A DNA stretch of 63,640 nt, the filler included, from Intoshia linei (taxonomy: Eukaryota > Animalia > Orthonectida), in the NCBI GenBank assembly GCA_001642005.1. It is 5 parts of 5 records of this genome, joined end to end, with 100 filler letters (N's around TTAATTAATTAA, not from the genome) between each part and the next. Parts side by side here need not be neighbours in the genome. Positions count along the whole stretch, not along the records: positions 7,584 to 35,622 come from LWCA01000419.1; 4 more parts are not named here. One strand, 5' to 3'. Every line of letters begins with the position of its first letter. The stretch's first letter is position 1. Positions 1,768-26,587 of the stretch are shown here, one piece after another. The position numbers and the translations under genes were made by a program. Under the pieces are notes generated by a model. The model was not told the origin of the DNA. It saw only the letters and a list, made by a program, of their open reading frames with translations, and made no database searches.

Positions 1768-4700
1768 AAAGCACAAGCAAGTTTAGCGGAATCAAAAGAA
1801 TATTTCTCAAATCAAATTGAAATAGCAAAACAAAAATGTAATTTTTTTATCAGTGAAATAAAAATATGATATTTAAACATATTAGGGCAATTTAGCCTTT
1901 ATAAACTGAATTTAATTAGCAAATTTTGAAATTGAAAATTCCAAATACAATAAAATTGTTGAAACTAAAGAAGCCATATCAAAATTATCTTATGACCTTC
2001 AGGTTAATTTATATTATAATACATCTGATATCATGTCATGTATGTCATTGGCATGTTAGTATAATAAAAATAGTATTTGTGTGTTAAAATGCAAGTTTGA
2101 AAAAATACGCATTAATTTAATTTAATTAGTTAAAAATTATATGCTGGAAAAATGACGTGAAAAATTAAATATGCTTTGTTTGTCTGTGTTATCGTTTATT
2201 TCAATAACTACCACTTTTAGAATTTTATTAAGTTCACATTTCTATTACAGTTTTTTCAGGGGTGAAATTAAGATATATTTCAATCTTCCAAATTAACATC
2301 TTACAAGTTGTTGGTCTTAACCCTTTTGTAAGCACCAACTCTCGTCACTTTGGAAAAATTTTTCTAATAATAATTATTTTTTAACTGTTAAAGATGAAAT
2401 AATTATATGATATTATGATAATCAAAGTATTTCGGGTTACCCACTTTTACGAGAAATATTTTTTAGTTTTTTTTGTTTAGTTTCCAATAATTTTTTCCTA
2501 TTCAGGAAAAATATTATTAAAAATGAATCCTTTAAGAGTTAACAATGGTCAATTGTATGATGAATTGTCAGTCGTAATATAATAATGTTTATTAAACATA
2601 ATACATTTTATATGAATAATGACAGTACTGATTTTGTCAATGTTAATAAACTCTTACTATGATAATATCTATGATATGAATAGCCATTGACCAATTATTT
2701 GATTTAATAATGACTACATAAACTTATTATTACTGTATGCAAATAAAATTTACCATAAAACCGCTTTTCAAATGTGTAAATAAAAATTAGGTGTTAATTT
2801 ACCAAAGATCAGAATTAAATACATTAACATACATATCTAAATAAATGTTTGTTTTAAATTTCAATTAATGTTGCAATACAACAGTTTCAGGTTAGTATGT
2901 TGATGAAAATAGTAGATTCAGAGATAATATTTACTTTAACTTTATGCAAATTTTAATACAATTGTAATTTATCAAAATGTAATCCAATAAATGTATGGGA
3001 GAGCAGTTGTTCCCAAAAAAAACAATTTTAGACACCATAGTCAGAGCGGAATCTACCAAGCTTGAGGCCACCAAAATGAAAAATAGGCTCTAAAAAAATG
3101 TCCCCACTAGATGCGTGGTGTCATATATCCCTATAATATATTTTATGATGTTATAGATAAAATAGTTAGTATGTTTAAGAATATAATTTTTTTAATTCTC
3201 AACGTGAAAAAATGAAGCTCTATTTTACAAAAAATTTGTCGATTGTCACAAGGGGTTTCGGCACTACCCCTAGTCGTATTAAAATATTAAAAAATCAATT
3301 ATTTTGTTAGAAATCATATTTTGCATATTTATAAAAAGTAAATCAACTGAATAGATGCCTCCGTAGGGTAGGGTCTTTATGAAATTTTTATAAAATTGGG
3401 TCACATTTTTCCAAATCTAGCATTTAAAATTTAAAACTTCTACTCTGTTTAATTTAAACTGACAATTTACGTCAGTGGAAAGGTGGCTGTGGCTAATAGC
3501 CATTATAAATGTAATTTTAGTAACCTGTTTATATATATGGAATATTATATTGGTTAGTGTTCAGAATTCTAAACTATGAACTTTTTTTAAATCTTCCCCG
3601 AATCTTCACAGTATACAGAACTGACAGTACTATGTATTCACTTTTTCAGTGTTATATTATATTATAAATACTATTACAGTAATTAATTTCATTTCATTAA
3701 ATTGTTAAAGATAGAAAAAGCATTTTATTTCTAGCAATAGTGCCAACTGGCACCAGTATTTTTCAGTATAAAACCATTTCAACAAATAATTGATTTGAAG
3801 GATAAATGTAATGCTAGCATATTTAATGTATGATAACCGAACCTAGCAAGCTCGAGACCACTCAGAAAATAGAAATAGGCCCTCAAAATTTTTTTTACGA
3901 AATATGGGTAGTGTCATACCCCCTGACTTAATCTCTATGACCCTTGATTGAAATTTTAAATACCAAATGGTTTATATTCAAGAAGATAATTTTTTAAAAC
4001 TCAAATTGGAAAAATAAAGCAACCATTTTACAAAAATTTTGTCGAGGCCCCGAAGAGGGATCTCTTGTATTGTAGATTCGACACTGTATGTGTTTTTTCA
4101 AATTCAAATTGAACGATTTTTTCAATTTTAGTTTTTAACATTTGTTAATTTTAATTAATTTGATTAAATTTAATTTTAAACTTTAAAAAAAACAAAAGTA
4201 CCCACTAAAGTAATATAACATTACATTTTTCAAATAATGTTTTTTAAATTGATATTAGATGGCCAAGACCAAGCAAGAGCTTATTGCTGAACAAATGAAT
4301 ATTAAGATTGTAGAGAAAAAACAGGATATACAAATTGCTAAACAGGAAATTTTCAGGAATGAAAACGAGCTAAATTCTACCATTAAACAACCAGCGTTAG
4401 CTCAAATGTACAAGAAAAAATTAATGGCTGAAACCGAAAAAAATATGATGATAAAAAAAGCTGAAGCAGAGGCTGATTCTATTAGAGTAATATTATTCTC
4501 GTAGTTTTATAAAGGGTTGTACTCATACATTAATATATGCATTATTAAAGTTGGTGTGACCTGAATCAGCCAACGATTTCCACCCCTACTTATAATATTG
4601 TCAGTATCTTATTAATATTTTAGATGAGAGCAGTAGCTGAAGCAGAAACAATAAAGGCACAGTCAATATCAGAATCAGAGAATATGACCAGAAGAGCAAA

Positions 4701-7582: not shown

Positions 7583-8095
7583 NTTATGAAAAAAATCCAC
7601 TTCATCAAACCACAAATAAAAAATTTAATTTTCCAGTCCTTAATGGAAAAATATCCTTTTTCACGTACTTTTTTTTAAAAACCTCTTATTCCAACCACAA
7701 ATTACTAACGCTTAATGGAATTATCCTCTTTTTCCAATATTATTTTAAAAAAATATTATAAGTTGTTACGAACTGGAACGCTATCATCAAGATTGTTAAA
7801 ATAAGGAAGCCCTTATGACCGTTCAACCTACGTCAACACAAAATGAAAGAAATTTCTCTACTACTTCTAATTTCGTTACAAAACGTAGAACGCGTTTAAA
7901 TTACAAATCTATCAATATTATCTGTGTTTTGAAACACTTTTTCAACAATTTAAAATAAATAACTTTTTTTCTAATTAAATTTGTAAATTTCATCTAGATT
8001 AGTGTTATTTCATTAATTAAATTTCTTTTTGTTTCTAAAATTTTTAATGTTTCTATATTATATATGAATAAAAATTTTTATTTTTCCCGGGAAAT
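7583..8095 (+). mobile_element. hAT transposon remnant (C-terminal dimerisation domain)
   Basis: Translates to ALMTVQPTSTQNERNFSTTSNFVTKRRTRLNYKSINIICVLKHFF*, with a CCCGGGAAAT subterminal motif. Confidence 0.75.
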
Positions 8096-10189: not shown

Positions 10190-10990
10190 TTTTTAAATTT
10201 CTGATTAATAAAAAATTTTTATTCATATATAATATAGAAGCATTAAAAATTTTAGAAACCTTAATTAATTTTAGAAACAAAAATAAATTTAATTAATGAA
10301 ATAACACGAATCTAGATTGAAATTTACAAATTTAATTAGAAAAAAAATTGATTTATTTTATATTATTGTAAAAGTGTTTCAAAACATACCTAATATTGAT
10401 AGATTCGTAATTTAAACGCGTTCTACGTTTTGTAACAAAATTAGAAGTAGTAGAGAAATTTTTTTAATTTTGTGTTGACGTAGGTTGAACGGTCATAAGG
10501 GCTTCATTTAATTTTAACAATCTTGATGATAGCGTTCCAGTTCGTAATAACTCATAATATTTTTCAAAATAATATTGGAAAAAAAGGATAATTTCCTTAA
10601 ACGTTAGTAATTTGTGGTTGGAATAAGAAGTTTTTAAAAAAAAGTATTGGAAAAAGGATATTTTTCCATTAAGGGCTGGAAAATTAGATTTTTATTTGTG
10701 GTTTGATGAAGTGGATTTTTTTCATAAGATTTCGTAAAATCGGATTTTTGAAAAGAATATCGGTGTAAGTCAATTTTTCCATGAGGGTTTGAAATGGTAA
10801 ATTTTAAATATTATTATTTATAATATAATCATATTTTCATAGTAATAACAAAAATAAATCAAATACAGGTATGTCTCAATTTTTTTCGGGAAATTCCGGG
10901 AAATCGTAAAAGTCACGGGAAATTTAATTCCCGGAGATTATTAAATATCCCGGTAATTTTGTCTCGGTTTTTTTCCCGGCACAATCATTA
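10190..10990 (-). mobile_element. Second, inverted copy of the same hAT remnant including a terminus with CCCGG(G)AAAT repeats
   Basis: 10190-10727 is a close reverse complement of 7583-8080. Clustered CCGGGAAAT motifs at 10888-10982. Confidence 0.75.
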
Positions 10991-11429: not shown

Positions 11430-14400
11430 GGGATCAGCTTTAGCTCTTACATGTAGTTATTTATTTGCTTTGTTGTGTTTAATATATTACATTATAATGT
11501 CTAAAATGTACAAAAACTCTTGGAAAGGTAAATTTTATTGTTTACATTTGTTAATTAACCCTTTCACTGTCTAATACTATTTTATGATGCATCACCACAC
11601 ATCTGGAATTTATGTTTTAATTTATACATGTATTATTATTAAATTACTAATGTGAAAATATATGAAAATAAAAGAATAAATTTTTTCAAAATCATGCTGT
11701 GTATATTATAGAATACACAGACGTGTGAAGTGTAATTGCTGTGTATAGTATAGAATACACATGTAGTGTAAGGGTTAGAATTATGACTTATATAATGTAC
11801 TGTCTTAATTATACACATTAAATGTTGATAACCCATAAATTAATAACGGTAAATCTTTTTATTTTATGTAAATTTTAAAATAATAAATTTAATTAAAATT
11901 TTTTAATTTATGACAAATGATTTCTAATTATAACTTATAATAAATATTTAGGATTCACACGAGAGTCTTTTGTTTATTGGAAAAGTTTTATAAAGTTGAT
12001 TATACCGGGAATTTTAATGATTGCATTAGAATTTTTTATTTTTGAAATTGGTGTAATTACAGCTGGAATAATTGGACCTACTGAATTAGACACTCAATCA
12101 ATTATTGTTCAATTTAATGCAATATGGTATCAGGTAATATTTTATATGATTCATCGTTTAACATGTTAACTTTTTTTTAAGGTTGTAATTTTTATTTTTC
12201 GGTTATTAATCTATAATTATATATTTCTTTTGTTAATTATCAACTACACATTAATTTATAAAATTTTATTTTTTATCGTAACGATTTGTTTTATAAGTAT
12301 TATTTAGAACAGGGGTGCGCAACCTTTCTATCAATTCAGCCGCAAAGCTACTTTATCCATTGATACTACAGCCGCACAAAATTTAATTTAACATTAAAAG
12401 AGTTTAAATCCATTTTGATAAAAATATTTTTTTTGAATTTGAAGTAAAATGATATATTACATTATAATGGCATGAATTTCCCACGACCGCAGGTTGTGCA
12501 CTCCTGATTTAGAACCACTGCAGTGCACTGGTTTAAAATATATATTGATTTATTATAGATATATTAATGTAATTATTACATTATGATATTTTTAATATTA
12601 AACGATTTTAGTTGCCGGTCGGTGTCGAAATTTCTACAGCTATACTTATAGGACAGCATGTTGGATCCGGAGATAAAAAAAGTTCTATAAACCTCATTAA
12701 AACTTCATTCGTTTTTATAAGTATGATTTAATTTTCTTTTTTTATTATATTATTAACTAGGTTGACTGTTATGTACTACGTACAAACAGCACCTAGCTTT
12801 GCTGAGGGCACACTTTTATTTTACCAAAAAATAAATTCATTTTTTTTGAAATTGTAGGATCAATATTTACATTTTCAATTTTTATTTTAACCCGTAAGAT
12901 GTGAGTTTGGGAGGTTGAAATTTATTTTGCTAACACCCTCGGAAAAAACTGTAATTGAAATATGGACTTTATAAAATTCTAAGACTGGTAGTTATTGAAA
13001 TAAACGGTAACACACACACAAACAAATATTGCATAACATATTATATAAGTAAGGATATAATTAATAAATATTTATATTAATATATGTATTAATATAGCTT
13101 GTATGCTTTAAAGTTTAAACTTAAACGATATACAAACAGTAGATTATGTAGTTATGATATATGTATATGTTTGAGTATATAAAATATTTGAATAGTGATA
13201 AATACATATGGTTTTTAATATCAAGGATTAAAATTATTTTCACTTAAATCTTGAAAATGGTGAGTTTATCTCACCTGAATAACCTGCAACAGTTATAACT
13301 TATAACTTATTAAAAATTTTCATTTAAATTTGGATTAAATTGTCGTATGTGGAATTAGCATGTTACACAGCTATATATGTGTACTACTTATTGTTTAGTA
13401 AACATATTGTACCAGGTATAATGATACCACAATATTAATAATTATGTAAAATTATTTTAGGTATTATATCACTTGTGGCAGGAATTGCTCTTGTTCTTCT
13501 TAGACATAGTTTATCTGGCTTATTTACAAATGATGCGTAATTTTCACTAATCACCTTATTATGTTACACTGTTAGATTTTGTATACTGATTAATTTTAAT
13601 TTAGTCGCGTCATGATGTTAATCGGTGAAATTTTGCCAATTATTAGTTTCTATATATTTTTTGATGGCATCAATGTAATCAAATTAAACTTTGACCAGTA
13701 TTTCTGAAACCCTTTTGATTTGCAGACTCGCAGGCTATTTAATATTTTGTGACTCATTTAGATAAACTAAAATTTTCAAAATGTAAAAATATACAAAAAT
13801 GTGACCATCAATTTACAGTTTCCGTCATTTTGTTTTTTCTGGCAATTTGAGAATACCAGTCAATTTATTAATGAATGGTAAAGTTGATAATTTAAGAGAA
13901 TGTCACATAACCTTAGTCCACATGTCCCTTTTGGAACTTTAATTTTTTTATTAATCATTTATCATGAAATTAATGTCCAACAAACTAACAGCATATCATG
14001 ATTTATATGTAAAAATAAAACATGAAATTTTCTGGCGAATCATGGGTATAGAGCACTGGATTATCCATGTATAGTATACATTATTATTATATATACTGTA
14101 TATAATATATTTTTTAAATTTTAAAATTAGACTGTTTGCAAAGGCATTTTGTATGGAACTGGTCGTCAGTATATTGCTGTTGTTTTAATGTTTGTTATCT
14201 ATTATTTTATCGGATTGCCAATATCCTTGATTGTCATGTTTAAAACACATTTTGGAATAAATGGTTTATTTTAAAAAATCTAATTATTATTAATAGGATT
14301 CTGGTTTGCCCTTGGATGCATCATCATTTTAATTTCCATTTTCATGACTAATTCCGTAATTAAAACCAATTGGAACGACATGATTGCGCAGGTATTTTGA

Positions 14401-17039: not shown

Positions 17040-20000
17040 TCAATTTAATACATATTGCAATAAAATTGATATAATAATTTGGAATAACATAATACAAAAA
17101 ATGTTTCTAATGTTGATGATACAATTACAACTATGTTGTAAATGGGTAATGTTTTTGTTAACTTGGAGCATATTTTCATTTAATTGTTTTTGGTTTTCAT
17201 ATATTGGAGTTATACAGGACGTGACAATATTTTGTATAGTTTTGGCATACGCTTTATGGTCTAATTTTGCAGCTAAATGAAATATTCAAATGTAAATACA
17301 AATTAATGGAAAGTAATATAATAATACAGTAATAGTGAAATATCTAACCATCATCTGGAAATAACATAATAAATTTAAATATTAATGTAAATGTATTTAA
17401 ACTTTAATTTAAAAAAAAATAATACCTTTGAGTGAATCTGACATTACATTATCAGATGTCTTTTCTTCGGTGCTATAATTATTTTCAAATGATTCAACTT
17501 GGTTGTGGTTTGGTTCCATGGACAATTTCCGAGAAAATGAGTTTGTAGCATTGTCAAATTGAATATCTACATATTTTTTTCCTATTAATGGTGTAGTGTG
17601 TATTAGGTGAGTATTTACAACGTAATCTATCTCATATTGTTTTAAATCAACCTAAATTTCAGTAGTTTATACTAATATTATATAAATAAATTTAATATAC
17701 AATATATTCCAGTTTTAACCATATTTAACTATAATATAAAACACGATATTAAAAAGACATTTTAAAATATATATCAATATTCGTATTAATAATATTTAAC
17801 AAAAAAATGCAATTACTTTGGCATCCCAAGGACGGTTATCTCGGTACTTGTAAAACCATTCTTTTATGGATTCATTCCATTCAAAAAGTTTTTGCGTATA
17901 TTTAACATTTGGATTGTTTTTCAATAAATCTCTTTGAAGTTGTTCGATTTCGTTTTTAGCGTCTTTAGCAGCGTCATAATCGTTGATTTTTAAAAATTTT
18001 ATAACATCAGACCAAACACTACGCTTTTTTTGAATAATTTTAGATAATATAAATTACCGGTTCGATTCATTTTCTGTGAGATTTTCTGGATTAATAACAT
18101 ATCTTTCTAGTCTAGTTTTAATAATGTCTTCATTGGTGAACCAGATAAGTTCTTTCTCTTTCTAAATTTAAGTTACATTAATTACATTATTTGAATTTCC
18201 TTTGATTTTATCATTGATGATTATAATACTTGAAATAATTATTAACACGTTAATTAAAACAGTAAAAATAAATTATCAACTTTTACAGTGGTCGTTGCAT
18301 TACAGGGTTAAATGCATATTTGATATTTTTAAAATAAAAAATGTAATACACTCTTTGATCTTGAGTTTGAAATATAAACTTGTTTGTCCCAATGGCCATG
18401 AATAGTTGCAAACGTTTTAGTCCCAAGTTTTATTTTACCAGATATTATATTTGAAGTACGAAAAAATGACTAAATTATTACATCAAAATAAATATTAATA
18501 AACAAATAATGCAGAACTTTACCTCCAAATGTAATTCAAGTTCAACATGATATCCTGTTTTAAAGCAATTGATAGAGACATTTCCACCCAATTCCATGGA
18601 CAAATTTCCATACAGTATACCTTAAAAATAAAATAAATCCATTTCACATTTTAATATCTAATTATTTTTTTACCTTTGCAATGAGCACATGGTAAATTTA
18701 TTGTATATTCTTCGCCCAGTACAAGCAAAGAAATTGTAAAATTTCCATAAAATTTTCCAATTAGGGAATTTCCTTGATACTTTGATTTTGCTTCAAATGA
18801 TCCGTGTACATTATATCCCATTTTTCGATTAGTAAGATAAAATGCAGATATTGGCGGATGATGAGAAACCTAAAATGGTTTGACCTGTTTTATATTTAAT
18901 AGGTTGAGTCAAAATTTACATTATACAAGGAAAAATCAATTTACATGTATGTTTAGATTACATGTGTATAAACATTTCTAGCGTATTTTAAATTTATTGA
19001 TATTATCCATCGGACGTACTCGTCAGACATAAAATGATATTGAAAACTTAATCATCTTAATATCATATCACTAATACATATTAAAAACTAAAATAATGTT
19101 TAAAAATATCAATTTTGATAATGATCAGATTGGTGAAGTAAATGTCGATTTTTATTTTTTTTTAAGAGACTATATGACAGAAGAAAATTCTGAATTAAAC
19201 AATTGTGTCAATACACTAAACCAGGGATGCACAACCTGCGGCCGTACGGCTAAATTAGAATTTGAAGATAGATTTGGAGAACTAAAAACTATGAAAAACA
19301 TATTACAACTAGGTTCGCCTCCTTTTATGTGTGATATTAACAGCACTCTTCTTGAATTCCAAATGGAATTGCTGGAAATTAAAAACGATGAATTGATAAA
19401 AAATAAATTTAATGAAAACATTGATCTTGTGGAGATATGGAAGTATGCATTTGCATATCCTTCACTTTGTGAGTTAGCTCGGAATACTCTTGTTGCCTTT
19501 GGGAGTACGTATTTATATGAGTCAGGGTTTTTCCATGAAATATTTGAAAAATCAATACAGATCACGCTTAAAAGACTCAAACTTGGAATCATCATAGATT
19601 GATGTTCTCTCCAATTCCGGTCGATTTTAAAATATTTCCCCAATTTATCCAATTGAAATATTTCCCAAGCATCAATTGATGACAATAAAATTTTGATACA
19701 TTCCAACCACATTGAAAAATGAATATTAGATTCAAAGATATAATTAATTTAAATAGTCCAGATTGGATAATGTCACCTTTTGATGTAAACGTAGAAGATG
19801 TAGAAATTGAATTAAGAGAAGAATTTATTGATATGCAATTTGATTTGGTAGCTAAAACTAAATTTAAATATACGACACTCAGCAATTACTAGCTAAATCG
19901 GGAAAATATGAAAAATTACCCAAAAATGAACGCAATTTCTGAAAGTCTGATGTTATCATTTCCTACTTCATATATGGTCGAATCTAAATTTACTCATGTC

Positions 20001-23000
20001 AATTATCTTTTGGGCAAACATAGAACATAACTTAATATTGAAAAACGTGGCGATTTACGTTTAAAGCTTACCACTTATTTATTAACTCCCACATCACTGC
20101 ATTAAACCAAAGAAAATTTAAAATGATGTGATCACGTTATGTGTACTCAAATTTAATTAATTCAGTACATTTTATAAGTGCAAATTGTGTATTTCTACAC
20201 AATTATCTACACAAGCCTCTGGATTTCTTCCTTTGGGGTTACCTTAAGAGTAAGGTCTATGTCAACAAGCCGACAACAATTGAACAGCTGAAGGATAAGA
20301 TAATAAGGCATATTGGTGAGATCGAGGAGCAATTATGCAGAGATATCATAAAAAATTTTGACCATCGAGTGGAGGTGTGTCGCCGAAGCTTTGGCAAACA
20401 TTTGGGCGATATTATTTTTCACACATAATTGCCATGTGCCAAATAACATAATTCCATAAAAAAATCAATAAAATTTACCCATTAACATTGTTTTATTTAC
20501 TGTTTTTATCGATCCGTCTTAATGAAACACCCTTTATAAAATTTATCAATTTTTTCACTTTTGAATAAATAAAAATTTTGACCCCATCGAATGTCAGCAC
20601 AAAAGAAGCGAAAATATTCATCAGAAAACTAAATTTTCAATTTAGAGTGGGAAAACGACTATTTTTTAGTTCAAAATAAGTCTGGAATGATTTGCCTGAT
20701 CTGCAGAAGCAATATCTCAATAATAAAGAAATGCAACGCTGAAATGCACTATAAACTTTATTTTAATAATCAGATTACCAAACTTGAATGAGATGACAGA
20801 AAAAAAATTAGAGACATTGAAAAACCAGCTCAAAAATCAACAGACTCTTTTCAAGAATATTTTCAATCTTGGTCAAGCTCAGACAAAAGCTAGCTATATG
20901 ATAGCTTCTTTACTTGGCAAAAAAGAAAGAGCCTTCTCTGATGCCAAAATGGTTAAAGAAGCTATAATTGAAACAGTCAAATGTGTCAAGCCACATAATA
21001 TATCAAAGTATGAAAATATTCCTCTTTCAAGGCGCTGTATTGTCAATAGACAGACTGAAATTCAAAATAATTGACTTTTCTGAAGAAAATAATTTTTAAT
21101 CTCTTCATTGAACTGATTTTAAGAGCAACAATTCTTTGTAAAATAAACATATGAAAGAAAAAGAATTTATGCAAATACATACAACAATTATTTTTATTTT
21201 TTGTTGTGGCCTCTAGGAATTTTCGCTAGACAGATTTGGTCACTGATTGTTCAATCGACAGGGGTAAACAATGCATTTTTGTGGCTGTCAAGGATACTAG
21301 GGATCGTCTCTCTTCAAGTAGTTTCACCGATAATGCCGAATATCATCATTTCAAACTTCTCAAACTCCATTCCGTTCACAATTGGAGCGTTAGGAGCCCA
21401 ACAGGGTATAAATCAGGCAGTTTGGTCACTTTTAACCGCAGATCTATCGCTATCTATCTATATACCTATATGGCTTGTTGGTCAATGTGTGTGTGAAAGA
21501 GATAACATGGTAACTACAACCTTCTTCCAAAATAGAATAATCTTCTTTTCTTGGCCTATGTATACCTAGCCACGCGTATGTACTCTAAATGTACACATAC
21601 TTTAAGAGGGACATCATTCAGACAAATGATCTTACTGGCTGTAAGGAAAAGTGTCTTGGAGACCATATCTCACGATATGGATGACATGATTTTTGATAAA
21701 TAGTCACATATCAAATATAACAAGATGGCCTCTGGAAAAGAACCGAATTCTGGTCGGTTAAAATTTTTAGGAACCCAGAAATTTTGAAAACGAATGTTAT
21801 ATTAAAAGGAGTTAATGGAAATGTGTTAAATTGTTAAAGTAAAATCATTCTTGATAATCGAGAAATGGAAAATGTAGAAATCTATATTACTGACACTGAC
21901 AATAGTATTGGTTGTAAAACACTGATTGAATCAGAGAGTATAATCCCATCAAATGGTAAATTTAGTATTTTGACACATAGAAATAGTTTAAATAATTTGT
22001 TAAACAGTGAAATTCCAGCATATCCTAGTCATAACACTATGAAAGAGATTAAATCAAAATTATCTAAATTTTCATATTTAAATCCTATATTTGATGATAT
22101 TATTGATAATTTCTCGGAAGTTATATCTATAAAAATGGATAGGGACTCTGAGGGATAAATATCCAGTTCCAAATTTATTGGTAAATATTACATGGCTCGC
22201 CCTAGATGTTTCAAAGGGAAAACTTTACCCGTAGATTATCAGAGTAGTAAAAAAGTCTGGACGACTTAAGTTTTATTTGTGAAATGGATTATGAAAATTA
22301 ATGATAGAATGATATCCAAATATAGGAAAATTCTATTATTCGTTGACAATTGCCCTTGTCGCTGCAATGAATTTGTAAATTCGTCATTGCAAGTTTTAAT
22401 GAATGTTAAATTAATTTTTTTCCCTAAAAATATTACAAGTAAAGCCTAACCCTTGGATGCTGGCATTATAAAATATATTAAACAAGAATATAGGAAATGA
22501 AACATTTGATATTAATCATTGCAGTATCAATCTACACAAAGCAATTCAAACAATATCGGAATGTTGGAGTATATTAAAGGAAAATACAATTAAAAATTGT
22601 TTTAAAAAATGTAGATTCAATGTTCTTGATGATAATTGTACACTGGATAAGACGTATTATATATTTCATCATTTATCATTGATAAATTATCAATTTAAAC
22701 TTTAGATTTAATTATGCAGTTTCTGCAACTTAAAATACAGTGATATCTCGTTCTCGTTAATAATTCGTGCTTTTTAATTTATTGTTTATTAATGAATCCC
22801 ACATGCAAATTATTGTCTATTAATAATAAAAAAAATATTATTAAAGAATTCGAAAATAAAACTCAAATAGGTAAAATAAATATAAAAACAAGTATTGAAT
22901 TATATTTCTAATTTTAGAAATTTCAAAATTGTATAATGTTTCGTCGTCTTGCATATCCAAAATAGTGAATAATAAAGATAAAGTATTATCTGAAATACCA

Positions 23001-26000
23001 ATTAAAAAAACAACTCATACGTTCATCAGAATTTTCTGAAATGGAGAGTCAACTATACGCATGGGTTAACTTGAAAAGAAAGAATAGGCGACATGTAATT
23101 ACCATTGACATCCAAGCGAAATCCATTAGTATATCTACAATTTTATATGGAGATAATGGATTTAAAGCAAGTTATGGCTGGACCAATCGCTTTAAGGATA
23201 GGCACAGTATTCGTAACCTTAAAATAACTGGAGAAAAATTATGGGCCGATGAAAATGCTGCAAAAGTATGTTTCCATGTTTAATGACATTACTAGAAACC
23301 TCTGTGACGGTCACATATTCAACGCCGACGAATGTGGCTTGATTTTGGGAGGCAAGTCCTGACAGAAAACTTGTTAATAAATACGAAAAAACAGCACCCG
23401 ATGAAAAATTAAAAAAGGAAAGATATACGTTTTTCCCAGGGTGTAACATATTTGGAAATTTGAAATTAAGGCTGGTTGTGATAGGAAAGTCAATAGATAT
23501 GAATAATTCATGTATTTTTTAGATTGTTTGAAAATTAACAAAAAATAAAATTTGAATTCTCCAATCAAACATGCGACTGCACTGATGAAATTTTTCCAAA
23601 AAGAAGATATTCATCATAATGATGGGTATATTATCTCTAAATTAAGAAATTCTTTAATAAAATCAAAATATAAATTTAAATTTTAATACTTTTTAACAAA
23701 TATATGTATACAGATATGTGTAATACAAAATATTATACATTACAATTTAAAATGAAACATGTAAATAAAATATTATGTTCAATTTGAATCGTATAGAATA
23801 TATAATTAAAATTATTCAATAAAGGTGTCTATATCTTGGCACTTTATCTCGTTCTCGTCAAAATCATATCGACAAAAAAAATACACTATAATCGTTATAC
23901 TGAAAACTTCTAATTGGACACAAAAAAATGTAGCTGATGTAAACGGTGTATCTCAGTCAATAGTATCAAGGTTAAAAAAATCTTTGGAAGGATATCATCA
24001 TATTTCTAATTCAAAAAGGAATAATTGTGGGAGACAAAAATCCACTAATGAAAGAACCGATAGAATAATAGTGTAAACTACTCTGAAAAATACAAATTCA
24101 AGTTGCACTGAAATTGTTGGAAACCTCAAAATTATAAACATAGAAATATCAAGACTAACAATAAATCATCGTCTTTTGGCGGCCAGATATACATAACTAT
24201 AAATCATATACAAAAGTGACAAAGCCCCTTTTAACTAAAAGAATGATAAAAGCGAGGTTAGCATAGGCCAAACGTTATGAAAATTGGAGTGAAGAACAAT
24301 GAAACCAGGTTATTCATTAAAATTAAAAAATAATATTAAATATCAATCAATTAATTAATATTATCGAACCTAAATTATTATTTTTTAGGTGATATTTTCT
24401 GACGAATCAATGATTCGTGTCATGGATGATCGTTTCTATTAGTGTACGCAGAAGGTCACACGAGGTGTCGAGAGCAGATTGTATCAAAAAAAACTGTTAA
24501 ATTTCCTCAAAAAGTACTAAATCCCATACAAAATGACTAATGATTAAATTAACCAACAATTTTTGGATTTTAAAATTTTACAATTTTAGAATCTGCTTTT
24601 TGGAATATGGCGTTTATTAAAAATAAATTTAAAATTAAAATGTCTAAACAACATTTGGAGGTTATGTTACGATTAGGAACATCAAAAACTTTACCGAGAT
24701 TTCAATTATTAGCGACAAAAAAAGCCAATTACGCAAAGCACGAGTACGTGAGATGGATCCTCAAAGAGTTAACAGAGTAAATAATTAAATATGAGTACAA
24801 AAAATTTGAACAATCATAAAACTACAAAGAAATATAATAAATAGTTGAACCTGAAACGAACAGTTGAAATTATTAAAGTAAAACAGTGTTAAACGAAACA
24901 GTATATTCAGTCAATATTCCCCGTAATAATAAAATAGTAACTGTAAAATGTTTATCATCGAAACGAAATTTAAAACTCCTATATAATATTGATTAAAAAT
25001 AAAATATTCACAAATCTATTTTTTAAAAGTTACCTGTTCAGCAATATAATAAGTATGACTGTCGGTTTCAGGGTGATTCCAAAAGCATCTAAACGTTTCT
25101 CCAATGATAGGATTGAATGGTTTTTTGAGTGGTTTGGTTTTTTTGTATAAACAAGACAAGTACCATTTAAGAATATACTTGATTCTTTCAAATGGATCAT
25201 GTTGTAAACTTGCTTGATGTAAAATATTGCAATGATAATAATATTCACTTAGTTTATCAAGAAAAGATCGAGATTCAAAAAAATTGGCTGGCAGTGATAT
25301 TTTGGATAAATCGCTACCTGGCTTAAGCTGTTTCAACATGGACCAAATAACACTCGACTGAATTTCATCTTCCGGGTCTTCTTCATATTCTGTATCACAA
25401 TCAATATTGTCTACAATGTAATCGCTGTCATGAATAGAACACTCTGAAATATTAGTAGATTCAGCTATGGATGGTGTGGTAGTGGTAAGTTCTGTAGTAT
25501 CTGATACAGATTCAGTAACTTTACTAACATCGTCAAAATGTTTTTCATCTTCAACTAAATTACGAGGTATATGTTCGGCAGTGTATTCTGTAGATTCCTT
25601 GCTGATACTAGTGTTTGTTTCATTAAAATTTAATGTCAAAGTATCCTCAGGTAACAAACTAGAGTTGGAATCTCTTAAAATTTTGGAAGATAAATGGGAA
25701 GTGACAATTTTTGAGCAAATTTCTAAAGCTTCCAGCCAACAATTCCCTTCAAAATCATTTGGTGAACGGAAAATTAAATGATTGTACGGTAAAGGCTTGG
25801 TGAAAGCACCTATTGATTCTCCATTGGGTCCACGAGTAGCCCAAATAGAACTATTAATGGGACTATTCAGTTTAAAACAAAACCCGTCCTTTTTAGAAGG
25901 TCTTTCAATAACTTCACAAGTATTTAATAAAATAGTTCCGATCCATTTTCGATTCTAAATACAGATAATGGTTACACATTAACCTTTCACTATCTGTGTA

Positions 26001-26587
26001 TTCTATATTTTACTGAGCAATTTAATTTCACCCGTCTGTATATTCTGATATACACGGCATAGTTTTGAAAAACTTTATTCTTTAATATTATAAATTTTCA
26101 CATTGGTGATTTAAAATAACACAAGTTTAAATTAAAACATAAATTCCAGACGTGTGGTGAATCACCACATGATATTACATAAAATTTCACTGAACAGTGA
26201 AAGGTTAATAATGAAAATTTTTACCGTGTCAGACTTGTATAAAATTAGAAATCCAGGCATAATGATACACCAATATTTAGACCAACCATGTAACTTTGAT
26301 CTTACTTTGAGCCAGTCAGATTTTACAATTATATCAGCTCCTCGTAATAGACCTGCAATTTCTTTGGCCGCTAATTTTTTTCGTATTCGATACTTCTTTT
26401 TTTTATTCTACAAAATATAAATTAACATTTTAACAAATACATCAACCCTCAATTCTTCAGTGAAATCAAACACCGAAGCTTTAGAGTCGGTTATAGAAGC
26501 ATTAAATAAATTCTTCTTTGGTTTTCCATTAAAACTAGTACACAGATCGGAACTATTTTTACTTCGATTGATAGAACTTGTATCCAT
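17040..26587 (-). CDS. OSBPL8: Oxysterol-binding protein-related protein 5/8 (PH domain, OSBP domain, C-terminal TM anchor); start codon uncertain
   Basis: PH domain (DWLKVRSKLHGWSKYWC, IERPSKKDGFCFKL) and ORD domain (LKQLKPGSDLSKISLP, KKPFNPIIGETF, AEQ|VSHHPPISAFY). Hydrophobic tail IFCIMLFQIIISILLQYVLN*. Contains a 6.2 kb intron at 18870-25033. Confidence 0.93.
19096..19670 (+). pseudogene. hAT (GTF2IRD2/SPIN-like) transposase C-terminal fragment
   Basis: FEDRF...FQMELLEI...YPSLCELAR...FGSTYLYESGF, then frameshifted KNQYRSRL. Confidence 0.85.
19670..20080 (+). pseudogene. Second, different hAT (Buster/ZBED8/SCAND3-like) transposase C-terminal fragment
   Basis: PDWIMSPF...EEFIDMQFD...YPKM...FPTSYMVESKF...RGDLRLKLT, with internal stops. 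Confidence 0.85.
20210..20538 (+). pseudogene. Tc1/mariner transposase C-terminal fragment with probable right terminus
   Basis: PLDFFLWGYLKSKVYVNKPTTIEQLKDKI...GKHL, followed by ...GAAACACCCTTTA. Confidence 0.85.
20592..21074 (+). pseudogene. hAT (GTF2IRD2-like) transposase N-terminal fragment
   Basis: KKRKY...FNLEWENDYFLV...CLIC...HY; KASYMIA...FSDAKMVKE...IPLSRR. Confidence 0.85.
21760..22160 (+). pseudogene. LTR retrotransposon pol fragment (region downstream of the protease active site)
   Basis: ILKGVNGNVLNC*SKIIL...EIYITD...IGCKTL...IIDNFSEVIS resembles the gypsy protease C-half and linker. Confidence 0.5.
22170..22625 (+). pseudogene. pogo/Tigger DDE transposase fragment
   Basis: PRCFKGKTLPVDY...RKILLFVDNCP...FFPKNITSKA*PLDAGII. 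Confidence 0.85.
22738..23480 (+). mobile_element. pogo/Tigger element 5' part (TA|CAGTG terminus, HTH-psq and CENP-B HTH, start of DDE), with a 47-nt intron
   Basis: KTQI|EISKLYNVSSSCISKIV; MESQLYAWV...FKASYGWTNRFKDRHSI...ITGE; IFNADECGL. Confidence 0.85.
23860..24520 (+). pseudogene. Tc1-family transposase 5' fragment with an 80-nt intron
   Basis: WTQKNVADVNGVSQSIVSR...CGRQKSTNERTDR; KPLLTKRMIKARLA*AK...NWSEEQ*NQ|VIFSDES. Confidence 0.85.
25983..26204. mobile_element. piggyBac-derived MITE in an OSBPL8 intron (related element at approx. 11558-11776)
   Basis: TTAA|CCTTTCACT...AGTGAAAGG|TTAA terminal inverted repeats with TTAA target site. Confidence 0.8.

Follow-up and report, generated by a model that had tools for sequence, protein, structure and literature searches.

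Antisense transposon remnants in an oversized intron of Intoshia linei: a graveyard probably shaped by orientation-dependent selection

Why should a single intron of a protein-coding gene hold the remnants of so many unrelated transposons, all of them lying antisense to the host? The question is raised by a locus of Intoshia linei, an animal with a compact, AT-rich genome (41.6 Mb, 27% G+C) and a fragmented assembly (3520 contigs), which we studied in a 63,640-nt stretch of joined records, referred to here as the window. The initial annotation had proposed that this intron may be a transcribed antisense memory array feeding piRNA or siRNA silencing, with selection against sense insertions as the alternative. 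We instead favor, at a probability of roughly 60%, the view that this oversized intron is a transposon graveyard and that orientation-dependent purifying selection shaped it.

The intron and its contents

The intron interrupts the EQVSHHPP motif of the host protein (EQ|VSHHPP). Its splice sites, both read on the - strand, are canonical gt..ag (donor ..GAACAG|gtaac at 25033, acceptor ttttag|GTTTCT.. at 18870), and when the host exons were searched individually against Pfam the Oxysterol_BP profile resumed across the array with a continuous host frame (3-105, then 103-166), so the bounds first proposed, within a - strand OSBPL8-type gene, are exact. The intron is ~100 times the median of 57 bp reported for the species (PMC6543705), and transposon debris makes up ~80% of it. 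Nine coding remnants were recognized: four different hAT pieces, a Tc1/mariner-like 3' end, a retroelement pol fragment, two Tigger/pogo pieces, and the 5' half of a Tc1. Pfam searches of the raw fragments confirmed only the Tigger pieces and one zinc finger; the remaining families were identified through better-preserved paralogs, the Atlas, or own-genome protein matches. The features, in window coordinates, are as follows.

18654-18869, - strand: host exon downstream of the intron, starting VSHHPPISAFY... (Oxysterol_BP E 1.2e-11, profile 103-166)
18870-25033, - strand: intron of the oxysterol-binding-protein-related gene, 6164 nt (splice sites read together with Oxysterol_BP flanks)
19100-19636, + strand: hAT-1, C-terminal part of a transposase, both ends truncated, left limit approximate (paralog L005)
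19712-20110, + strand: hAT-2, C-terminal part of a second, distinct hAT-like transposase (motif by eye)
20215-20538, + strand: Tc1/mariner-like element, final 70 codons and true 3' terminus, 5' truncated (Atlas transposase / DDE_3 clusters)
20535-21260, + strand: hAT-3, 5'-truncated N-terminal part fused to its own 3' end (zinc finger; Pfam matches of paralogs)
21261-21837, no strand: single-copy stretch without a family, about 33-40% G+C
21838-22155, + strand: retroelement pol fragment, from the region directly upstream of the RT domain (own-genome protein matches)
22160-22735, + strand: Tigger-B, DDE_1 from about profile position 24 to its end, both ends truncated
22738-23497, + strand: Tigger-A, CENP-B_N, HTH_Tnp_Tc5 and the start of DDE_1, 3' truncated (Pfam)
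23497-23860, no meaningful orientation: short non-coding repeats of at least three families
23865-24519, + strand: N-terminal half of a Tc1-like element, 5' truncated (relatives L003, L022, L023 and L028)
24515-24780, + strand: hAT-4, C-terminal tail of another hAT-like transposase (repeat; assigned by eye)
25034-25954, - strand: host exon upstream of the intron, ending ...YYIAEQ (Oxysterol_BP E 7.9e-30, profile 3-105, match spanning 25019-25954)

The Dimer_Tnp_hAT domain of the hAT superfamily was found for hAT-1 and hAT-3 through their closest paralogs, and hAT-2 and hAT-4, which gave no match in a direct Pfam search, were assigned by eye. Between 19261 and 19636, hAT-1 shares 91% identity with L005, the frame of which matches Dimer_Tnp_hAT (E 4.7e-5), and 90% with L021, and other copies of its family reach at least 60 bp beyond 19636. 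The C-terminal motif by which we recognized hAT-2 is FPTSYMVESKF...RGDLRLKL (83% identity to L019 over 19712-20046); that of hAT-4, ...LEVMLRLGTSKTLPRFQLLATKK..., looks by eye similar to the tails of hAT-1 and hAT-3 (80% identity to C1402:16254-16494 over 24515-24723). Pfam placed a Spin-doc zinc finger in hAT-3 at 20633-20788, its paralogs match DUF4371 and Dimer_Tnp_hAT, and its copies lose alignment at about 21257-21260. The zinc finger piece had been described as a hAT N-terminus, which holds, but the sequence that follows it (21061-21260) is the 3' end of the same hAT, joined to it by an internal deletion at 21061-21068 with an 8-bp overlap; L016 and L027 hold both parts in conserved order. 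Internally deleted non-autonomous hAT copies are also present elsewhere in the genome (L016).

The piece first called mariner falls within the Tc1/mariner superfamily by its Atlas DDE_3 matches, mariner itself being a narrower assignment than the evidence carries. At least eight copies match it at 94-97% identity; they align with one another beyond 20215, and each of them ends at 20538. The Tc1 piece is 79-91% identical to its four relatives, which reach at least 240 bp further 5', and the L003 frame gave a weak HTH_Tnp_Tc3_2 match; because it retains a gt..ag intron-like insert of approximately 85 bp (about 24306-24389), we take it for a DNA copy rather than a retrocopy.

The order of CENP-B_N (E 6.8e-4), HTH_Tnp_Tc5 (E 1.5e-10) and DDE_1, together with a TA-flanked terminus, identifies Tigger/pogo, with the domains spread over two truncated copies. 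The true 5' terminus of Tigger-A, TA|CAGTGATATCTCGTTCTCGT, is common to L041 and L042, and the flanks upstream of the TA differ. The DDE_1 match of Tigger-B (C1934:14603-14995(+), window 22186-22578; E 1.4e-20) contains five stops, and its copies in L020 and L024 run 130 bp beyond 22735. A single, circularly permuted Tigger was considered and rejected, as Tigger-B is truncated 3' and Tigger-A has a terminus of its own. The non-coding repeats match L039, L040, L042, L044 and L045 at 69-91%, and a second copy of a Tigger-type end motif lies at 23846-23858.

The fragment initially called gypsy pol is indeed retroelement pol: its relatives at C2099:24412-24678 (E 1.2e-7) and C133:7872-8129 (E 9e-6) both sit 200 bp upstream of an RVT_1 match on the same strand. 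A gypsy assignment, or any choice between LTR and LINE, goes further than these matches do. A candidate gypsy integrase at 21230-21493 was rejected, as it does not resemble the integrase of the contig itself and has no Pfam or Atlas support, and the single-copy stretch at 21261-21837 showed no repeat in its own genome, no Pfam match, and an Atlas score of merely 0.76.

Separate insertions followed by deletion

Unrelated pieces are packed closely, as had been noted, although the original count of eight becomes nine coding remnants. The fragments adjoin with overlaps of 0-8 bp, and only three element ends survive among them (the mariner-like 3', hAT-3 3' and Tigger-A 5' ends), which bears out the observation that most lack their own termini. 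Two junctions are TA insertion junctions, namely the 'tata' overlap at 20535-20538, between the Tc1/mariner-like end and hAT-3, and 22736-22738, at the 5' end of Tigger-A; the others look like deletion scars. Identity of the fragments to other genomic copies ranges from 76 to 97%, and no other locus in the genome has two neighboring array fragments together. Since families and divergence differ and no neighbor pairs are shared elsewhere, the fragments represent independent events, and since the array is unrepeated elsewhere, they entered as separate insertions and were trimmed by deletion afterwards. Nine different elements thus arrived by separate insertions. For at least two the target was a TA site in an older element, and internal and junction-spanning deletions left nearly all nine as fragments without termini. 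When we looked for nested insertions, the mariner-like element and Tigger-A each had a TA at one end only, with the recipient half absent on the other side; since no insert is flanked by both halves of its recipient, deletion has erased most of the record of nesting. Insertion at TA sites into older elements, followed by internal and junction-spanning deletion, is also the history of known nested TE graveyards, from which this array differs in its missing recipient halves and in having all of its pieces on one strand.

Three other origins were weighed at this point. A template-switch chimeric retrocopy, suggested by co-oriented and abutting pieces, was rejected given the retained insert of the Tc1 piece and two DNA termini with TA, and neither a poly(A) tail nor a flanking duplication is seen in the array, which also counts against it. 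One composite element bounded by a 19-nt inverted repeat (19005/24740) was rejected because the repeat does not extend. Finally, a short-read assembler might have joined repeat fragments that lie apart in the actual genome, as the fragmentation into 3520 contigs and the short overlaps could suggest; however, no assembly k-mer is anywhere near as short as these overlaps, two of the junctions show the TA expected of a genuine insertion, the copies are diverged individuals and not a collapsed consensus, this piece of sequence contains zero N, and the flanking host exons fit together, making such an artefact very unlikely.

Strand orientation in the intron and across the genome

The nine coding remnants all occupy the + strand, antisense to the - strand host gene, and ten - strand frames of the intron gave zero Pfam matches and no transposon domain, confirming the uniform orientation reported initially. 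The nominal probability of 9/9 on one strand is 0.002 (one-sided), a post hoc value for a scan of many windows. Past the last identified upstream exon of the host gene, in a region of the LWCA01000419.1 part taken as intergenic, orientation is mixed, again as described (Tc1 +, LINE -, gypsy -).

The initial annotation had called for a count of TE orientation throughout the genome, with a value near 50:50 speaking against its proposal. We counted two small, independent samples, chosen after the hypothesis had been stated. Relative to the nearest host exon, with kinase, Piwi, Ago and Tudor exons as reference and distance taken to one known exon and not to gene borders, 10 TE coding matches were opposite and 1 was the same within 5 kb, and 16:4 within 10 kb (two-sided binomial 0.012). 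In the second sample, of fetched loci, eight were opposite and one the same relative to the nearest Pfam-confirmed host exon. Together, 18/20 were opposite (10/11 within 5 kb and 8/9 at fetched loci). Two places are proven intronic, the intron studied here and, among the fetched loci, a mariner-like copy between two OATP exons in L008; the others were placed without gene annotation. From these small samples, the evidence leans toward an antisense excess that is general in the genome and not confined to this intron.

Could the array nevertheless be a striking intron drawn from a very large scan, with some fragments of common history? It was indeed singled out post hoc, the N-terminal part of hAT-3 belongs to one element together with the stretch that follows it, and same-family neighbors elsewhere are tandem in 8/8 cases judged by eye, so local duplication does exist. 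Against this, the nine remnants differ in family or copy, no junction is common to another locus, and the same bias recurs in the two samples; we consider chance and non-independence quite unlikely. The opposite-strand bias also appears at 3-5 kb from the reference exon, both upstream and downstream and thus possibly outside that gene, and it spans three DNA-transposon superfamilies plus retroelements, as might be expected if integration or repair preferred one orientation relative to transcription or replication, a mechanical cause and not a selective one. However, those distances run to one known exon and not to gene borders, the identical skew would be required of four unrelated transposition mechanisms, and we know of no such preference for Tc1/mariner, pogo or hAT cut-and-paste elements; this explanation seems to us improbable to the same degree.

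Selection against sense insertions or a source of small RNAs

In the reading that we favor, orientation-dependent purifying selection, insertions coding in the same direction as the host transcript would have been removed, their sense strand being presumably harmful as an A-rich sequence with the element's own promoter and splice-like and poly(A) signals. Antisense insertions would have been tolerated and would have accumulated, later elements landing safely within earlier ones, and an identical filter operating genome-wide could yield the orientation of about 90% opposite-strand near genes. Small RNAs from the intron, if any, would then be a by-product and not the cause of the array. AATAAA and ATTAAA together number 43 on the TE-sense strand vs. 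23 on the host-sense strand, a difference that is mostly base composition, and GTAAG occurs 2 vs. 2 times; with 12 copies of AATAAA remaining on the host-sense strand, avoidance of poly(A) signals would by itself be a weak filter.

For human and mouse, an antisense bias that arises through selection against sense copies has been documented, and its accepted cause is that such copies terminate or mis-splice host transcripts (PMC3517506, PMC3088655, PMC1794541). The intron resembles those cases in that remnants within a spliced intron lie mainly antisense to the host gene, and differs in that the bias looks much stronger (9/9 locally and about 18/20 elsewhere), in that it includes DNA transposons, for which human shows merely modest bias, and in its compact 41.6-Mb, 27%-G+C setting. 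The strongest human orientation bias is ~2:1, for LTR elements (PMC3517506), and a bias of ~90% that includes cut-and-paste DNA transposons exceeds this, which counts against selection. So do the persistence of the bias at 3-5 kb from the reference exon and the weak co-orientation of neighboring TE matches from different superfamilies. Selection is nevertheless the documented default, and we give this mundane reading priority over a functional one because it predicts the same pattern, is documented in other animals, and a 6-kb array in a spliced intron is unlike known uni-strand clusters. As an instance of this known phenomenon, the intron is well resolved.

Known uni-strand piRNA clusters extend over tens to hundreds of kb and owe their status to their piRNA output, and the antisense fraction of flamenco is about 85-90%. 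A functional source would have the host pre-mRNA read the array antisense to yield piRNAs or siRNAs that silence matching families, either from the intron itself or from dsRNA formed with sense transposon transcripts, so that antisense copies are positively selected and expressed genes replace classical clusters in a 41-Mb genome. It would fit 9/9 antisense remnants of at least eight distinct families, with identities to genomic copies sufficient to guide silencing, and a truncated, nested, multi-family patchwork nearly all antisense to one transcription direction does recall flamenco and the gene-driven read-through clusters with antisense inserts of mosquito (bioRxiv 10.1101/2022.08.22.504762). 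The ~90% bias is, moreover, closer to that of flamenco than to that of mammalian introns (PMC3517506). Against it, the array is no long dedicated precursor locus but 6.2 kb that begin and end at splice sites of a coding gene, neighboring TE matches of different superfamilies within 3 kb are not clearly co-oriented (6 same, 5 opposite), and negative selection predicts every observed feature equally. We therefore judge this source unlikely, and a shade more so its extension, in which expressed genes would supply the uni-strand small-RNA clusters through their introns and read-through regions, with antisense fragments positively selected as Piwi/Ago guides, even though this would, if true, account for an antisense bias of ~90% reaching DNA transposons. 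Should the ~90% bias survive proper annotation, it would be the strongest TE orientation filter reported in an animal, cut-and-paste elements included, and would offer a clean system for setting negative selection on host transcripts against positive selection for small-RNA guides.

The initial annotation had also called for an inventory of Piwi, Ago and RdRP genes. A literature search found no small-RNA data for the organism, and a eukaryotic RdRP, whose absence would count against a small-RNA source, was not found in the genome by a search run without a positive control. In favor of such a source, and as in flamenco and mosquito, the genome has a Piwi-clade gene (C96 ORF, 714 aa, best match PIWIL1, E 3.5e-112) and three Tudor-domain genes, along with an Ago gene; this machinery is permissive and does not discriminate between a piRNA/siRNA source and selection.

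The host intron and its contents

Contig C1934 (28,039 bases, ~27% G+C, no N), part of an assembly of 41.6 Mb in 3520 contigs, carries a load of Tc1/mariner, hAT, pogo and retroelement sequences. This load, the base composition and the size of the genome mark the contig as animal but non-human. We profile-searched the host exons singly, each as a separate frame, and found that positions 18870-25033 are exactly one intron of an oxysterol-binding-protein-related (ORP) gene, as had been proposed in the initial annotation: the interval is flanked by two Oxysterol_BP exons and bounded by canonical splice sites (donor CAG/gtaac at 25033, acceptor ttttag/G at 18870). OSBPL8 is a plausible putative name for this gene. 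The median intron of I. linei is 57 bp (PMC6543705). We searched the intron against its own genome at the DNA level, which divided it into segments with sharp borders, each with its own relatives; families were assigned by comparing these relatives mutually, translating the better-preserved frames and searching the families genome-wide.

Features of the host gene and of the intron
26165-26407, - strand: PH-domain exon, further upstream in the host gene
25019-25954, - strand: Oxysterol_BP exon frame (profile 3-105), ending ...YYIAEQ
18654-18869, - strand: Oxysterol_BP exon frame (profile 103-166), starting VSHHPP
~19100-19636, + strand: hAT-1 C-terminus; a paralog matches Dimer_Tnp_hAT
19712-20110, + strand: hAT-2 C-terminus, motif recognised by eye only
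20215-20538, + strand: Tc1/mariner-like 3' end
20535-21260, + strand: hAT-3
21261-21837: single-copy stretch without family assignment
21838-22155, + strand: retroelement pol piece, whose sole relatives lie ~200 bp upstream of RVT_1 domains
22160-22735, + strand: Tigger-B DDE_1 (E 1.4e-20, five stops)
22738-23497, + strand: Tigger-A (CENP-B_N, HTH_Tnp_Tc5, start of DDE_1)
23497-23860: short non-coding repeats
23865-24519, + strand: Tc1 N-terminal half
24515-24780, + strand: hAT-4 tail

Roughly 5 of the 6.16 kb are repeat-derived. The earlier claim that every coding fragment of the intron lies on the + strand held, with nine remnants on that strand and no domain match in any of ten - strand frames of the intron. 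One of these ten, a stop-free frame of 192 codons (19173-19748) without a Pfam match, lies exactly opposite the hAT-1 frame, and its length is unusual for a 27%-G+C genome. We also observed an isolated, G+C-rich 19-nt inverted repeat (17/19 bases) near both array ends, at 19005-19023 and 24740-24758, with no extension beyond the repeat.

Origin of the patchwork

Three true element termini survive in the intron. The mariner-like copies align with one another past 20215, yet all end at 20538, and the 'tata' there is common to their end and to the beginning of the hAT-3 homology; the mariner-like element is a TA insertion into hAT-3. Tigger-A begins CAGTGATATCTCGTTCTCGT immediately after TA, and since two other loci share this end while their sequence upstream of the TA is unrelated, Tigger-A was inserted where Tigger-B now stops. 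Finally, hAT-3 has kept its 3' end, but ~1-2 kb of its interior is gone, and the deletion shows an 8-bp overlap (21061-21068); one related locus (L027) holds the missing part, and another (L016) has a different internal deletion. Internal deletion is the usual route to non-autonomous hATs. The remaining fragment borders are all truncations, as other copies show the families running on beyond them.

At no other locus in the genome did two fragments from different families stand side by side as they do here, so the array is neither a mobile nor a duplicated unit. The Tc1 piece keeps a gt..ag insert of ~85 bp (24306-24389) that interrupts the transposase frame, is carried by its relatives too, and resembles a spliceosomal intron within the gene of a Tc1-like transposase. 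This retained insert and the DNA termini oppose an origin as a template-switched retrocopy. The patchwork fits a history of repeated insertions, some into earlier insertions, with later deletions erasing most junctions.

Strand bias and its likely cause

Nine independent remnants on one strand have a nominal one-sided probability of 0.002, for an intron picked from a very large scan, and we therefore sought independent tests of the bias. Using coordinates only, we compared 579 DDE_3, DDE_1, Dimer_Tnp_hAT and RVT_1 matches with 145 Pkinase, Piwi and Tudor host-exon matches; the transposable element (TE) match lay on the opposite strand in 10/11 cases at distances of up to 5 kb from these exons and in 16/20 at up to 10 kb (two-sided binomial ~0.012 for each), and DNA-transposon matches were opposite in 8/9. 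Among loci fetched as relatives of the intron fragments, the nearest Pfam-confirmed host exon was on the opposite strand at L008, L016, L017, L018, L024, L026, L030 and L037, with L012 as the one same-strand case; two OATP exons flank the L008 element, which is thus a proven antisense intronic copy. Adjacent matches of different superfamilies showed no clear co-orientation (6 same vs. 5 opposite within 3 kb; 17 vs. 9 within 10 kb), which counts against a general bias. The two comparisons with host exons (5-kb count and fetched loci) combined give 18/20 opposite, in small samples in which most cases are not proven intronic, well away from the 50:50 orientation that, according to the initial annotation, would speak against its proposal of an antisense memory array.

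A second co-oriented patchwork occurs in L004 (G000:C21:3696-7171), where Tigger N-terminal frames, the 5' part of hAT-3 and another transposase-like C-terminus follow one another at ~700-2470, all on the - strand. It adjoins a 148-codon ORF (3031-3474), also on the - strand, which has a degenerate Ras-like start and lacks a Pfam match; if this ORF is a host exon, L004 is a sense-oriented counterexample. A further example of the rare sense-oriented copies is the C213 locus.

Selection against sense-oriented insertions yields just such a pattern and is the most likely meaning of the array. The effect is on record genome-wide in human and mouse, with terminated and mis-spliced transcripts as the ascribed cause (PMC3517506, PMC3088655, PMC1794541). 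The TE-sense strand of the intron is A-rich, and AATAAA/ATTAAA motifs are about twice as frequent on it as on the host-sense strand (43 vs. 23). Base composition explains most of this difference, and the host-sense strand retains 12 AATAAA, so the counts single out no specific harmful signal. Human LTR elements show a bias of at most roughly 2:1 (PMC3517506), whereas the bias here is stronger and also covers DNA transposons; this excess is the only unusual aspect.

The reading of the intron as a source of piRNAs or siRNAs is improbable. Judging from predicted genes, small-RNA machinery is present: of the Piwi, Ago and RdRP inventory suggested in the initial annotation, we found a Piwi-clade gene (G000:C96:4321-6465, + strand, a single 714-codon open frame; PIWIL1 and Piwi-A best at ~E 1e-112 vs. 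1e-35 for AGO2) and an Ago-clade gene (C1332, matching AGO2 at E 1e-169), alongside more Piwi-domain fragments and three Tudor-domain genes, but no eukaryotic RdRP in a genome search run without a positive control. The RdRPs reported from I. linei are of viral type only (PMC6396948). The fragments are 76-97% similar to other copies, which would be close enough for a guide role; however, a spliced 6-kb intron is unlike known uni-strand clusters, and no feature seen separates positive from negative selection. The TE array itself is real and well resolved, and selection against sense insertions, the ordinary alternative, accounts for everything seen.

Other repeats and genome observations

Same-superfamily TE neighbours, read by eye in this genome as distinct copies up to ~3 kb apart, shared a strand in 8/8 pairs, which suggests that elements, or parts of them, are often duplicated locally in tandem.

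Same-strand neighbours
C436:53478/54868
C1718:26628/27353
C2057:321/1052
C1195:17837/20470
C2711:712/1807
C461:134/1092
C1510:74804/76666
C2902:9434/12276

One hAT C-terminus stands in three tandem partial copies in L005, and in L022 (G000:C2917:2480-5734) a Tc1-like copy is apparently nested in a hAT-like element, both on the - strand, with hAT-type frames (2109-2318 and 481-696) on either side. A broken Tigger DDE_1 fragment (C96:7615-8058, - strand) lies ~1.1 kb downstream of the Piwi-clade gene, on the opposite strand. In the window, another hAT-like C-terminal end has two inverted copies ~2.5 kb apart (7800-7955, + strand; 10467-10810, - strand) upstream of a gene on the + strand that is provisionally MATE-like and has no Pfam match; an intron of this gene holds MITE-like short non-coding repeats of ~75-180 bp (12309-12384 and 12726-13065), and many fetched loci have further copies of these in their flanks, in either orientation. 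Many kinase-domain matches in this genome read through at least one in-frame TAG codon; the simplest explanation is read-through of very short introns that end in ..tag, rather than a variant genetic code.
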